From contig NW_027192197.1 of NCBI RefSeq assembly GCF_041956535.1, positions 445,829-509,828 of the forward strand: a stretch of DNA of 64,000 nt, in the 5' to 3' direction. Shown piece by piece: positions 3,323 to 20,015 of the stretch; position 1 is the first letter of the stretch, and each line of letters starts with the position of its first letter. The stretch comes from Calcarisporiella thermophila CBS 279.70 (Eukaryota; Fungi; Calcarisporiellomycota). The translations under genes and the position numbers were made by a program. The notes under the pieces were generated by a model. It was given only the letters and a program-made list of their open reading frames with translations. It was not told the DNA's origin and searched no databases.

Positions 3323-4111
3323 ATGGCGCTTCGCAATATGCTTACTAACAGTCCCGAGCAAATGCATGTATCTTTCTGGAATTCGTCAGAATATAAAGAG
3401 GATGGTAAGTGCATTTTCTACGCGTTAGTTGCATCTCGCGTAACTACCCACCTTATCGCAGCCTTCTCATTTTTGTTCCTCCTTTTTTTACTTGGTTAAC
3501 CTCCAAAGAATCAATGGAAATGGACTTTTCAGAAACACCCATAAGAAAACCACATACTCTCCAGCAGTTTCACATCCACCACCAACAACACGTCCCAAAA
3601 TCGGTGCGCACTCCGCCTACCTTCCGCCGTTCCCTGTCTCTAATGACCCCTGAGGAGATGTCGCCTGGGGGTGGGAACGATCTCATGGTAATGACACCCG
3701 ATCCCTCCCTACGCCGGAAGCGTCATAGTGTATGGACTCCAGCCGACAAGATTGCAGAGGAGAGAGAAAATAATAGTAGCATCAGTGGGGTGATAGGGGC
3801 TACTCCCTTCTCGCTGCACACGCTAGCTCCCGAAGCAACCCCCCCGTGTCGCACGGAATATCATGCACCTCCCCTAAGAGGAGGGGCTACCGCTGCGAAA
3901 TTTGTCACGACTCAGGACGAGAACATCAGCCCCGCAAGCATGCGAATTTTGGAGGCCATGTCACTCAAATGCGGGGGCATTGGTGCAGGCGAGTGGGCGT
4001 TGATGAGGGAGCGGGGAAAGCTGGATAATGTAAGTATATCTGATTAGATTAAACCGTATTTTGCCTCCAATCGCTGACACGTGTCCAATATAACAATAGC
4101 CCTTTCTCTAG
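3323..4111 (+). CDS. Hypothetical 204-aa disordered protein with ten S/T-P sites, D-box/KEN-like motifs and C-terminal NPFL
   Basis: Exons 3323-3404, 3509-4029 and 4100-4111 join in frame through GTAAGT donors and AG acceptors (branch GCTGAC in intron 2). A U-rich 3' UTR follows. Confidence 0.75.
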
Positions 4112-4472
4112 AGTTCAATAGGGGAGGGGACCATAGAATATACCCCTTTTCATTCTTAATATGTACTATCGCCCTACCTTGCCGATATTTCACCTTTTCC
4201 TTTTATTTTTATTGCTGCGTTTTCTTTTGCCTATTTTTTTTTTTGCGTTTGGACCCTTTTCTTTTCTGTGCTCTTGATATTTCTACCATTTTTGTTTTCT
4301 GAAAATCATTTTTATTGCAAGAGGAGAGATTATTATTATTATTACAAACGAACTGAGCAAGATGAAAGAAATAGATATCCAGAAAATAACAATAGGGAGG
4401 GAACAGAAGGAGACACAAGAGTCCATTGCACAATGACCGATCAACGCCCATTGCGGCTATAGGCATTGCGCT

Positions 4473-4574
4473 TCACGGTAGTCGTAGAACATCGCGATGG
4501 GAACTAAATATGTGGTGACGAAGTGCTGTGCCATTCTGGTAATGGGAGTGGCAGTAAGGACAAAGTGGTGTCAT
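4473..4574 (-). CDS. 33-aa single C2H2 zinc-finger microprotein
   Basis: Manual translation gives MTPLCPYCHSHYQNGTALRHHIFSSHRDVLRLP*, matching C-x2-C-x3-Y-x5-L-x2-H-x4-H. There is an upstream in-frame stop, a TATA-like tract about 110 nt upstream, a pyrimidine-rich leader and a T-rich trailer. Confidence 0.75.
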   Translation of the reverse strand: MTPLCPYCHSHYQNGTALRHHIFSSHRDVLRLP

Positions 4575-4684
4575 GCTGATGGGTTTTTTGGAAGGTGATA
4601 AATCCGATGGATTTGAGAATTAGGGGATGGAAAGTGATGAAAGGCAGGGGTGTGGAGGGGCAGGTCGATGAATAGACATAGTCC

Positions 4685-4694
4685 TAATATATAT
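4685..4694 (-). promoter_or_regulatory. TATA-like element for the zinc-finger microprotein gene
   Basis: ATATATATTA on the minus strand, followed by a C/T-rich leader running to the ATG at 4574. Confidence 0.45.
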
Positions 4695-6654
4695 CCCACG
4701 GCCTCTCTCTACTTGTCGAACCTGTTCTACAGCTTTAACCGCTCTGATGAGCATCGATTGGCATCGTAATTAACACTTTTTCCTTAATTAAAGCCCTCGG
4801 GCCAGTCGTTTCCTGTTTGACATCTGGTTGTATTAAATCGTGCAGAGCCCCCACGTGAGGTCTGCCAGCTGTCCATATGCCCAGGATATGTTTCTTATAA
4901 GACTATACGGTACCACTGTGCATTAAACTATCGACCAAATGAAAGAGAATTATTGGATTTGGGTCGTATATCTCGACTAGTTCGCAAAGGCTTCCCCTCA
5001 ACTTTCAGGGAGTATTGAGTGGTGAGACTTAAAGTACTTCCATCGACAATATTAAATAACCAACCATGTTAAATAATATATTAAATTAAATGATTTAATA
5101 ATTGAAGCTTCCGGTTGTTCGGAGGGGGAGGGGGGGAGAGGAGGAGTCTCAAAAAAAAATTATTCAACCGCTGCTTCATAGAATTCGCCCCTCCATGTTC
5201 GCCCTCATATAATTAGCAAATCATCCTCGATAGTTGCAATAGATTGGATACTTGTGTTAAAATTATATAGGGCAGAGGTGTTGTGTAGATGGTGCTCAAG
5301 GATTAGATCCATTAGCCCATCGTCAGGGATTAGAATGGACTTATCAAGCTTCAAATGTATTTTGCGGTCTGGCTATTTCGAACTAGTGATGGGTTTGCTT
5401 TTTTCTTGCGGAAGGGATATGAGATATCGAGATTAGCGACTGTGGCTTCTAAAACATACATATGCATTTTCGTAATAAAGCTTTTAGATCTTTGGGGATA
5501 GTTCCCCCCCCAATTGCATTCAACCTCCTAAATTAGGGAGGATACAAAATGAGGATTTGACGAGGATGCAGTAGGATATTGTGCAATTGTAAAAGGGTTG
5601 GCGGGAGCCTCAGCGATGACTCAAACTCCACGTGGAAAGTGTTCAAGTATATTAAAGCAGTAGTACCCTGCCCGCCCGTCGCTAAGCGCGTAACTACTCA
5701 ATGTAAGCTTTCCTCCGCGTGTTACTAGAGTTGTTTATTTAGCTCACTCCTAATAAAGATATATGCGGGTCCAGGTCGCAATGCTCCCGTAAAAAGTTCC
5801 ATGAGGTTCCTTTTGACCAGTAAGGTTTCCCTTGGGCCGGATGACAGGGGCATTTCCTGAAGGGCAAATTCCCAGCGCGCTTTCCTTTTTATTCCGGAAA
5901 TCTGTAGTTTACTCTGGCAAAGGTCAGCCTATTGGTTCTCTATGGCTTGCCTGTAACAAGTACTTATATTAAAACTATCTCATACACTTAGCCCTCATTT
6001 GCCTCTACGCGTGTTGTGTGGTACAGCCTAGCGTGGACCATGCAGACCGTCGCAAGTGTTGAGAGAGAAGTGGTAGATGACGCGAGACAGATGGCTCAAA
6101 GTGCAAACCGTGATAAAGACATGGACTCCCGGCTGTGTTGACATCTTTCTTCGAGCAGTGTTGCGCTGTTATCTAATCTACTTGGGTGATCGGCGCTTCC
6201 CTCTCTCTTCTCTGAAAAGCCAAATTGGCGCGGCGGCTAAATGGCCGATGACACCAAAACAGAAATAAAACAGAGGCTTGAATTGCGAAAGGAGACCAAA
6301 ACTTTACCAGGAACACCTAAGCCGGGAAACCGGAAGCCCCTTTGTCGGCGAAATTATAAATTTGCCAAAAGGAGCCTTGCCACTCCATGAAGATTTATTC
6401 ATACAATATAGAGTCCCAGCTTATCTTGGACAGTCCAAGGGCCTGAACACCTTGTTCGTTAACAAAGTACCGACTCATCCTTCGACTCCAATACTCATCC
6501 GTGGCTCTCTTCCTCTCTGCCCGTGCTACTTTGCGTATTTCCAAAACAGGCAATCTGTTACTTTTCATATTCGGCCTTCAGAAACTTTTTCCCGCCCTTT
6601 CAAACCTCTCTCAGGTGTCAGCCAGATAGTGAAGAGCCCATCGTCCCATTCTTA

Positions 6655-9069
6655 ATGGCAATTACTGAATTTGCTGTCACCTCTGCCCTTGTTGGAGGAT
6701 TCATTATTATTTTTGGTTATGTTTCGCTATTTATCAAAGAGAAACTCTATCTCTCGGAAGCATGTAAGTCTCGATCGAGCCCTCATTCCATCCTCTTCCC
6801 ATACTGATTCGGTGCGTTTGCTAGTTGTGGCCTCCTTGGTTGGACTCGTCTTCGGACCTGCAATAGCTGGGCTGATTCTGCCTAACAGCTGGGGGAATGT
6901 CGATGTCATTACATTGAATTTCACTCGTGTGGTTATTGCTGTGCAAGTCATGGCAGCCGGGGTTGCTTTGCCAAAGTATTGTATAATATAGTGAAGCTGC
7001 CAGGCATGAGCCATATTTATTAACGACGGCGTTTTCATATTCGTTGTATAAAAGGGCTTATTTGTGGAAAGAGATCCGGTCTTTGCTTGTTCTTTTGGTG
7101 CCAGTAATGACTTGGATGTGGTTAATAAGCGGGCTTGCTATCTGGTTGCTGATTCCTGGAATCAATTTAGTGAGCATCGACTATTTTATAATCGACTCGC
7201 AAGACTTATTTATCTGCTTCGGCTCACCTTTTCTAGCTGGAAGCACTTGTCATCGCAGCTTGCGTTGCTCCCACGGATCCTGTGCTCGCAAACTCGTCAG
7301 TATTCAAATTGGTTACACATCTGTCTGTCCCTTATTCAAACTTGTTTTTTCGATTGGATGTCTTCAGAATAGTGAAAGGTCGTTTTGCGGAAAAGCATGT
7401 TCCACCTCATGTACGCAATATACTTAGTGCTGAAAGGTAATTCAAAATCGATACGGATTTTAGTGGCCTTAATTTCTCATTCTACTTCTACTATCATATT
7501 GTAAAATCATGTCTAGTGGTGCTAATGATGGTAAGCGAACGCTGTCCCTCAGCGAGGTGTTCAAGTGTCTAATATATCTATTTTTAATATCAGGTTTGGG
7601 ATTTCCATTTCTACTGCTTGCTGTTTATCTCTTGAAATACCAATCCGTCGGCGAAGCAATTGGCAGATGGATGTATATGGTGCTTCTCTACCAGATTGCA
7701 TTATCCATCGTGATTGGATTTGTGGTTGGGTATGTTGCGCGGAAGCTACTCTATTACGCAAAGCAGAGGTAGAAAGAACTGGAGCCTGGAAGCAAGAAGA
7801 ATTTATTAAAAGCTCTGCATGCTAATCTATCAATATATAGAGACTACATTGATAAGGAGTCGCTTCTCTCATTCGCCGTTGCTCTCGCCTTCTTTTTACT
7901 GGGGACCGTGTCCATCATTGGGAGCGACGATTTATTGGTAGGGAAGACCCGACATTTTGTGTCTTTTTGTTGGCATTAGAATAACCTTTACCATGCCCTA
8001 GTCGTGTTTTATCGCCGGGAATAGTTTTACTTGGGATGATTGGTTTCGAAAAGAGACCGAAGATGCGCATTTACAGGAAGTCATCGACATGCTGTTGAAT
8101 TTGTCTGTGTTCGTGTATATCGGCGCAGTGATGGTAAACCACCGAGTGCTTGCATTTCTATACTTAACTCGCTAACACGTGCCACTCGCACTCTCTCTTT
8201 TATCTTATCAGCCCTGGTCCTCTTTTGTAGATGCATCTCTAGGCCTCGACCTTTGGCGATTAATTGTGATAGCCGTTGTAATACTCTTGTTCCGTCGCCT
8301 TCCGATTATTCTTATCCTCTACAAGACCATCCCCGCAATCGTCACTTTCAGAGAGGCAGTTTTTAGTGGGTATTTTGGGCCGATCGGGGTCGGCGCCGTC
8401 TTTTACGCGATGGTAGCCAAGGAAGAGCTGGGTTCTCACGGATCTAGTGGCACACACGCCCAAGCTTCCTCTATAGTCTCGCCCGTCGTGTTCTTTCTTG
8501 TACTGAGCTCTATCATTTTGCACGGTATCACCATCCCTCTCGTCCACTTGGGCACTCGAATTGCTACGCGAACACTCACTCGAAATAGTAACCTCCATCA
8601 GGAAAACCAAGTTTTACGCCTCCCTATCATCAAACTTGGGCAAACCTTTACGCCACGAGCGAACTCGAGCACCGTTGATACTGGGAATATAGCAAGCAAA
8701 ACTTCAATGGCTGACTCCCGTTCAGCCTCTCCTGTGGAGTCGCAGGCCTCTTCGGATAAGCAGGCTGATGAAGCGCAGACTTCGACCATCATAGATTCCA
8801 ATAATAATTCTTGTTCTTTCACTGATAATACCTCAAGAGGACCAACTGACGTGGAAGATTCTTCCTCAGTGCAGGTCATCGTGTTCGACGAAAAGAATTA
8901 TAGAATGGACGAAGACCGAGAGGGTCACGTCATTAAAGTGACGTCTGAGGGATCCACAGACGCGGAGCCATCCAGAGCGACGCTAGAGTCCGATTCGAAC
9001 TCGGTTGAGAATACAAGTGAGAATAAACTGCCGGGGAAGATCAGGTTTGCTGTTGACAAGAGCAAGTGA
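6655..9069 (+). CDS. NHA1: Plasma-membrane Na+(K+)/H+ antiporter, CPA1 Nha1/Sod2 family, multi-exon
   Basis: SLFIKEKLYLSEA, FTRVVIAVQVMAAGVALPK, APTDPVLANS, SAESGANDG, GSDDLL, FTWDDWF and GYFGPIGVGAVFY, then a hydrophilic C-terminal tail. Confidence 0.95.
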
Positions 9070-18766: not shown

Positions 18767-20015
18767 ATGCCCTCAGTTGATCCACCAGCTCCCACCCCTA
18801 TTAATTCAGGGACTTTTCCTTTATTGACTCGGGAAGATGTACTGAATTGTTCCTTTTCTTCCTGGTATGGGAAATTCCGTCGCATCACTATTAAATCAAA
18901 GATCATTCCTCTCCCTGAGGATTTTGTTGAATATCTAAATGCAGATGGTGTCTTTGTCCCACAAGACAAGTTAGTCTTCAAAATTTTAGTTTAGAAAATC
19001 TTCATGCAGTTTATTCACTCTTGTCTCATTCTATTTCAGCACCATGGTCTCTTCCCTGAGCGATGATGAGGAGATTGATAATGTCGAATCAATAGCTGAC
19101 GAGTCTGACGACGAAAAGAGCAAAAGAAACATTCCTCCGTCCTTCCCTGCCATCGAATCTCAAATTCGAGAAGCAATAGAAGAATTCGAGGGTGCAGTGT
19201 TTCCTAAACTTAACTGGAGTTCACCACGAGATGCTTACTGGATTTCTTCAACGGGATCTCTTAAATGCTCCTCGCCAACCGATGTATTCTTGCTGCTGAA
19301 AGCTTCGGATTTTATCGCCCATGATTTGTCCCACGCATTTGAGCGATGCCATAATCAAAGCAACAACGAGGAGTCGCGTCCACCGGTATTTGAACTAGTG
19401 CTAAGGAAGTGGTACGATTTGCCTCCAAGTATGGAGTTTCGCTGTTTTATCAGAGATGGAAAGCTAATTGGTAAGCATCAACGCCCTAGAGAGTATCTAG
19501 TACGAAGCGCTCATGATTGAATTTTTAAAGCCATCTCTCAACGTGATATGAGCTATTATCCATTTCTTGAAGAAATGAGGGATGAATTGCGTCAAAAAAT
19601 AGTCGATTTTTATGAGTGTAGTATCCAAGGTTTATTCCCTAGTCAACACTGTAGGTCAAACAATTTCTTGCTAGTTTTTATAAGACTTAATATTTTTCGT
19701 TCGCTTCTAGTCGTCCTCGACGTGTACATGACCCGAAACCGCGACAAATTGTTCATCATTGATTTTAATCCTTTTTCACTTTCAACCGATAGTTTACTCT
19801 TTTCCTGGCAAGACATCATTTCTCTGCCAAATGCTACTGCCCCTGAAATACGCTTTATCGCATCGCACGCGGAGGCGAATGCGGCTAGATGTGCAGCGGC
19901 ACCCTTCTCGCACAATCGATATCCAAGCGATATTGTGGAACTCTCTGATGGTGAGAGCATTGCAGATTTTGCTCGGCGATTTCATCAAGAAATGAGGAAT
20001 GTGCGTGAGACTTAG
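18767..20015 (+). CDS. CDC123: Cdc123/D123 ATP-grasp eIF2 assembly factor
   Basis: CSFSSWY, IIPLPEDFVEYLNADG, VFPKLNWSSPRDA, LLKASDFIAHDL, MEFRCFI, ISQRD and IIDFNPF. Confidence 0.95.

Follow-up and report, generated by a model that had tools for sequence, protein, structure and literature searches.

The 64,000-nt stretch of Calcarisporiella thermophila DNA analysed here (hereafter the window, numbered from its first letter) carries on its minus strand an ORF of 33 codons, with its ATG at 4574–4572 and its TGA at 4475–4473, that encodes one classical C2H2 zinc finger. The features that make up the locus, all on the minus strand, are the following:

4685–4694 (about 4687–4693), minus: TATA-like box, TATATAT, 119 nt 5′ of the ATG, from a sequence scan
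4575–4684, minus: pyrimidine-rich leader, likely 5′ UTR, from its C+T content over the last 100 nt
4620–4622, minus: in-frame TAA, 16 codons 5′ of the ATG, that bounds the frame, from frame reading
4473–4574, minus: the ORF, 33 codons and TGA stop, from reading-frame translation
4497–4562, minus: finger core from Cys1 to His2 (CPYC-x12-H-x4-H), from the motif and a genome pattern scan
4209–4472, minus: open frame after the TGA, 87 codons with a Lys-rich tail and no detectable homology
4316–4311, minus: AATAAA, candidate poly(A) signal, 159 nt after the stop, from a sequence scan

Translation bears out the preliminary description, which had reported an ATG-to-TGA frame of 33 residues preceded by an in-frame TAA and containing a finger with a Tyr and a Leu in its core. 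The full pattern of the peptide is C-x2-C-x3-Y-x5-L-x2-H-x4-H: the ligand spacing, C-x2-C-x12-H-x4-H, lies within the classical C2H2 range (C-x2-4-C-x12-H-x3-5-H), and the hydrophobic core is formed by an aromatic residue four positions after Cys2 (Tyr12) and a Leu three positions before His1 (Leu18). Order-2 Markov shuffling of the window puts the expectation per 64 kb at 0.05 occurrences for the bare spacing and 0.005 for the motif with its Y/L core, so that a few chance matches could be conceived over the 28-Mb genome; it is the existence of paralogues, described below, and not the motif alone that argues chance away for this ORF. The codon usage of the 33 codons is indistinguishable from that of random short ORFs and is uninformative at such length. 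The window holds one other match to the bare spacing (19063–19131, minus strand), which is devoid of the hydrophobic core and lies antisense to a D123/CDC123 coding exon (19044–19520, plus strand); it is a chance match.

The ORF is located within about 2.7 kb of otherwise empty DNA. On its 5′ side, where some 2 kb of intergenic space had been described, the gap to the first detectable Na/H-exchanger exon of an Nha1-like gene (plus strand, near 7053) measures about 2.3 kb; on its 3′ side, a convergent plus-strand gene, whose ORF is 100% identical to VTP21DRAFT_10468 of C. thermophila, ends at 4111, 361 nt from the ORF stop. The end of VTP21DRAFT_10468 (window 4030–4111, plus strand) comprises a 70-nt intron followed by a 12-nt last exon (PFL and stop), and its product has a C-terminal NPF. 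Paralogues of this neighbour are found on contigs C14 and C11, away from the other finger loci, and no duplicated block was detected. The ORF locus itself is present in a single copy in the genome and is therefore not a repeat, and an Rfam search of positions 3900–7000 gave nothing credible, just a chance-level miRNA match. The TATA-like tract and the pyrimidine-rich leader reported earlier are both in place: TATATAT precedes the ATG as listed above, and the leader is 69% C+T over 100 nt, a content reached by just 1.2% of random 100-nt windows.

Comparison with domain profiles gave subthreshold scores. The best Pfam match of the window ORF is zf-Di19 (PF05605), with 17.6 bits for a cut-off of 27.5 (E 0.0045, profile positions 5–27 of 54). 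No Pfam C2H2 model reaches its cut-off: zf-C2H2_4 (PF13894) reaches 16.6 bits for a cut-off of 27 (E 0.013) and PF00096 is not reported, and thus the profile check suggested in the preliminary description, recognition by a zf-C2H2 HMM, came out negative at the Pfam gathering thresholds. The predicted structure is nevertheless that of a finger. AlphaFold2, run with a three-sequence alignment, gives a short β-hairpin followed by a helix at residues 15–25 (mean pLDDT 87), and the best PDB matches returned by Foldseek are all C2H2 fingers, with rmsd values of 0.5–1.5 Å over 24–31 residues, bearing in mind that E-values cannot reach significance at such a size. The peptide is thus predicted, on the basis of the model, to adopt the β-β-α finger fold. 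A language-model look-up places it among short C2H2 clusters, which we take as a lead only. The resemblance to classical C2H2 (PF00096, PF13894) and Di19-type (PF05605) fingers therefore concerns the ligand spacing, the aromatic/Leu core and the predicted fold, whereas the window ORF differs from them by its scores under the curated cut-offs and by its single finger, with no linker, tandem partner or basic flank, for a net charge of about +2; zf-Di19 domains, in contrast, contain two fingers.

Searching the 28-Mb genome with the peptide yielded two matches, one on contig C34 (L002, E 1e-3), within an ORF of 161 aa, and one on contig C3 (L003, E 2e-3), in a Met-to-stop frame of exactly 33 codons. 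A profile built from these three sequences added family members on C13, C1 and C4, the C4 member having one intron. Consistently, the DNA pattern for CPYC-x12-H-x4-H has 8 matches in the genome versus 0 in the reversed control, namely the 6 family loci, one BuGZ-like gene and one junk match with stop codons. The family is thus composed of four long proteins of 122–174 aa and two 33-aa frames (the window ORF and its sister on C3), and in all six members the finger follows a Met. Two of the long members, L006 (VTP21DRAFT_1980, 134 aa) and L007 (VTP21DRAFT_408, 122 aa), are annotated as uncharacterized proteins, with the Met just before the finger as their annotated start. Common to the four long members are an MG start, a finger at residues 9–30 and a C-terminal part that consists of a PGY..LAK.GYF motif, a Pro-rich stretch and a Lys-rich tail with a Trp. 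N-myristoylation of these proteins, which the MG start brought to mind, was dropped: Gly-Glu and Gly-Phe are a poor fit to the usual motif. The exact product of L002 (G000:C34:91933–92049, minus strand; ORF at L002:1129–1611, minus strand) is absent from the protein collection, and this gene may be unannotated or modelled differently. With 26.5–28.5 bits, L002 is about at the zf-Di19 cut-off, which it reaches in the genome scan.

In the window ORF, as in VTP21DRAFT_1980, VTP21DRAFT_408 and their unannotated C34 and C4 relatives, an N-terminal CPYC-x12-H-x4-H finger directly follows the start Met; with the C34 member it also has in common a D.L.LP motif past the finger. To put a scale on this similarity, we compared the window finger with its relatives and with 1063 background fingers; since the latter were drawn from the best matches to a profile of these very family sequences, the comparison is conservative. 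The window finger scores higher with L002 than with any of the 1063 background fingers and its score with L003 is in the top 0.4%, with 9–10 of the 25 non-ligand positions alike between the window finger and its paralogues. The window ORF thus shows the two features by which membership was judged, a CPYC-x12-H-x4-H finger within 9 residues of the start Met and significant similarity to the members, but differs from the long paralogues in having neither the MG start, nor the PGY..LAK.GYF motif, the Pro-rich stretch or the Lys-rich tail with Trp. Because the C-terminal part is absent in all frames nearby, we describe the ORF as a truncated relative and not as a full family member.

When 5.8 billion proteins were searched with the family profile, VTP21DRAFT_1980 and VTP21DRAFT_408 were the only ones to come up. 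A word-based protein search with the 48-aa open frame gave no match, and there was none either in metagenomes scanned for an exact 32-nt word of the ORF. An exhaustive profile search was dominated by multi-finger proteins, and the N-terminal matches that we inspected among its hits are not orthologues. The family with a CPYC N-terminal finger therefore appears lineage-specific, as far as protein searches tell; C. thermophila is the sole species listed in its phylum and represents an isolated lineage. The preliminary description had looked to conserved homologues in related fungi: homologues do exist, but as paralogues within the same genome only.

The promoter-like layout of the window ORF, a TATA box and a pyrimidine-rich leader, recurs in this family, the annotated paralogue L006 included: the C3 sister ORF has a TATATAA at −155 followed by a similar pyrimidine-rich leader, and the annotated C13 gene has a TATATAA at −186 and a leader of the same kind.

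The two short frames resemble each other in several respects. In a maximum-likelihood tree of the six N-termini, which rests on only about 33–41 columns, the window ORF and L003 are split from the four long members with 99/98 support. Both have their Met 4–5 residues before Cys1 (8 in the long members) and their stop 6–7 residues past His2. They are identical at 15 of 33 residues, including the Met, the CPYC, the core Leu, both His and an ALR-HIFS-HR stretch; all four ligands are kept in both, the core aromatic being Tyr in the window ORF and Cys in L003. At the nucleotide level, pS between the two is 1.05 and hence saturated, for a pN of 0.32. Neither short frame has plausible splice sites in its vicinity, and neither is accompanied by remains of the long form: when searched with a profile of the family C-terminal part, all frames up to 2 kb away from each short ORF came out empty, and none of the pairwise tests of flanking frames against the family C-termini is significant. 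Since no trace of it is left near either ORF, the C-terminal part appears to be absent rather than interrupted. Judging from these sequences, both copies look to have preserved an intact finger through a long divergence, and the short form seems old. Note that conservation between paralogues is a mark of past selection, not of present function. The sister ORF (L003:1489–1587, plus strand, that is G000:C3:748055–748153) has a GC3 of 0.88 for a flanking GC content of 0.48, and its peptide contains six Cys (CPYCCCRC), one of them replacing the core aromatic, so that its metal binding may differ from that of the window finger.

Altogether, we favour the view that the window ORF is an unannotated, stand-alone single-finger gene of 33 codons, kept by selection and belonging to a finger-only branch of a lineage-specific family, to which we assign a probability of roughly 55%. 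The TATA box and leader and the absence of usable splice partners are in keeping with the earlier proposal that the single-finger ORF stands alone and has a promoter-like region of its own.

The alternative that survives best, although we deem it unlikely, is that the ORF is a dead stub, i.e. the N-terminal remnant of a family member that has lost its C-terminal part and yields no functional product. In one version, a gene of about 121 codons would have been broken by a fairly recent nonsense mutation creating the TGA, or by an assembly error. This version draws on the 87 codons that stay open after the TGA, an occurrence to which a local Markov model gives a P of about 0.005, the codon log-likelihood ratio of this stretch being +0.09, near coding values; read-through would give 121 codons, close to the size of L007 (122 aa), with a Lys-rich end reminiscent of the family tails. 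The uninformative codon usage of the 33 codons and the lack of annotation of the ORF also suit a stub. Several observations speak against it. The downstream frame, which contains a hydrophobic stretch before its Lys-rich end, displays no significant similarity to the family C-termini, and another reading frame of this A-rich DNA yields the Lys-rich match just as well. The region 4209–4472 is CT-rich and then A-rich, which accounts for its paucity in stop codons, and it is on the strand opposite the probable 3′ UTR of the convergent gene; on account of this composition, of this position and of the absence of detectable homology, we read it as non-coding. Moreover, the sister L003 is also exactly 33 aa long, and the short clade seems old and yet is intact in both copies. 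Two further candidates in this region were set aside: a resemblance (PPYCYF/PPLYCFNF) downstream of the ORF is not significant, and removal of the TGA by splicing would take an "intron" of 20 nt, which is too small to be genuine.

Much less probable is that the ORF belongs to a larger spliced gene, either as its last exon, with the CAG that precedes the ATG as the junction, or as a first exon, with its stop codon lying in an intron. There is a precedent in this genome, the NCPxC...HARKWHK subfamily of fingers (L037 and L038) forming a terminal exon with a conserved upstream exon and intron, and a GTGAAG does overlap the stop of the window ORF. Splicing upstream was considered in the preliminary description as the event that would turn the ORF into the end of a larger protein, and the sequence offers no plausible exon or donor for it: with the CAG as acceptor, just two of the 53 GT sites within 1.5 kb resemble the GTAAGT/GTATGT donors of this genome, one of which has no open frame while the other requires an intron of 884 nt and gives 22 open codons, the introns observed in this genome measuring about 70–100 nt. 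Downstream, the GT sites from codon 20 on (GTTCCC, GTTCTA and GTGAAG) include no consensus donor and come with no branch point or sensible product. The position of the finger directly after a Met in 6 of 6 family members, with the start annotated there in two of them, and the TATA box and leader directly upstream also go against an exon. Finally, it is highly improbable that the ORF arose by chance in intergenic DNA and resembles a finger by coincidence: the rarity of the motif still leaves room for a few such frames in 28 Mb, the match at 19063–19131 is one for the bare spacing and the Pfam scores are under threshold, but the similarity to paralogues beyond the ligands, the 8 pattern matches against none in the control, the tree, the pN/pS values and the promoter layout all point the other way.

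If the ORF is indeed a stand-alone gene, the TATA box near 4690 would drive its transcription, translation would begin at the ATG at 4574, and the peptide would fold around one zinc ion. It might then occupy the partner, protein or nucleic acid, of the finger of the long paralogues and act as a microProtein-type competitor or adaptor, not as a sequence-specific DNA binder, a role that we infer from the absence of both the C-terminal part and a basic flank. The way in which the short form originated is consistent with the microProtein idea put forward in the preliminary description: a small single-domain protein is related to the domain of larger proteins of the same genome, which carry the same finger. 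This evolutionary signature is the part of the idea that our data uphold; the proposed mechanism is inferred. Plant MINI ZINC FINGER and LITTLE ZIPPER proteins are microProteins that act via known dimerisation domains and for which dominant-negative effects have been shown. The likeness to the window ORF lies in a tiny single-domain protein that arises by duplication and truncation from a larger family with the same domain; in contrast with them, the window ORF is known from its sequence alone, and its "large" relatives are just 122–174 aa long. Another parallel is provided by the GAGA factor and SUPERMAN (1yui and 1njq, both among the fold matches), in which one C2H2 finger is the only folded module, as here. 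DNA binding by these proteins, however, needs basic flanks or a QALGGH helix, whereas the window peptide has neither. Our search of the literature on single-finger microproteins in fungi found nothing relevant.

A finger-only protein of 33 residues with signs of long-term selection and larger relatives would offer a concrete case in which to study how microProteins evolve in an early-diverging, thermophilic fungus, as well as a naturally minimal and possibly heat-stable finger that is a handy object for folding and metal-binding studies. Since proteins so small are dropped by gene finders, fungal annotations may lack a whole layer of regulators. Conversely, if the ORF turned out to be unexpressed, it would stand as a warning that conservation between paralogues does not by itself establish a gene.

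The window ORF is not the sole frame of its kind. Scans of the genome with PF13894 and a mini-finger profile revealed at least 14 Met-proximal single-finger ORFs of 28–49 aa, several of which share a QLRYH..IHLR helix. A TATAWA lies at −250 to −40 in 11 of 14 of these ORFs, versus 21% by chance (binomial P 6e-6), and a pyrimidine-rich leader is present in 13 of 14; paralogue pairs have pS values of 0.73–0.91 and pN values of 0.21–0.28. The exact products of 12 mini-finger ORFs (the window ORF, its C3 sister and ten others; L035, L036, L039 and L040 were left out) were looked up in the protein collection, and none is there. We tentatively suggest, as a possibility that we rate at somewhat worse than even odds, that at least 14 stand-alone genes for single-C2H2 microproteins (28–49 aa, several families) lie hidden in the genome, each with a TATA promoter and under purifying selection and some arranged head-to-head, and that the window ORF and the sister on C3 are finger-only antagonists or adaptors of the 122–174-aa paralogues. 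Such a set, if true, would constitute a class of fungal regulators wholly missed by current annotation.

Seven Met-proximal single-C2H2 ORFs make up a second mini-finger family:

L021, C2:198632–198718, plus
L022, C2:146331–146420, minus
L024, C3:1342241–1342324, minus
L028, C20:443780–443863, plus
L030, C23:60820–60921, plus
L035, C9:616100–616186, plus
L036, C13:507625–507711, minus

They are 28–45 aa long and share a (Q/D)LRYH..IHL(R/I) helix, replaced by ELQQH in L021. The exact products of L021, L022, L024, L028 and L030 are absent from the protein collection. In the pairs L021/L022, L024/L030, L024/L028 and L028/L030, pS is saturated and pN is 0.21–0.28, and a TATA box with a pyrimidine-rich leader precedes 6 of the 7 ORFs, the exception being L021. 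Two head-to-head pairs of mini-finger ORFs were noticed, C2:196959–197036 (minus) with C2:198632–198718 (plus) and C32:200517–200600 (minus) with C32:202241–202318 (plus), the partners being about 1.6–1.7 kb apart in both. Their minus-strand partners, L023 and L026, are both 30 aa long and about 43% identical; the head-to-head pair may have been duplicated as a unit.

Two frames that end in HARKWHK were rejected as microproteins:

L037, C10:809771–809854, plus: HARKWHK-ending finger frame, terminal exon
L038, C10:806445–806528, plus: HARKWHK-ending finger frame, terminal exon

They represent the terminal exon of a tandemly duplicated larger gene, the upstream exon of which is 88–95% conserved. 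Because this NCPxC...HARKWHK subfamily is a last exon, not every short finger frame in the genome is a microprotein. L025, L027 and L031 are grouped with L037 and L038 by sequence similarity only. The intron of L037 and L038 runs from GTT(C/T)GT to TATAG or TGTAG.
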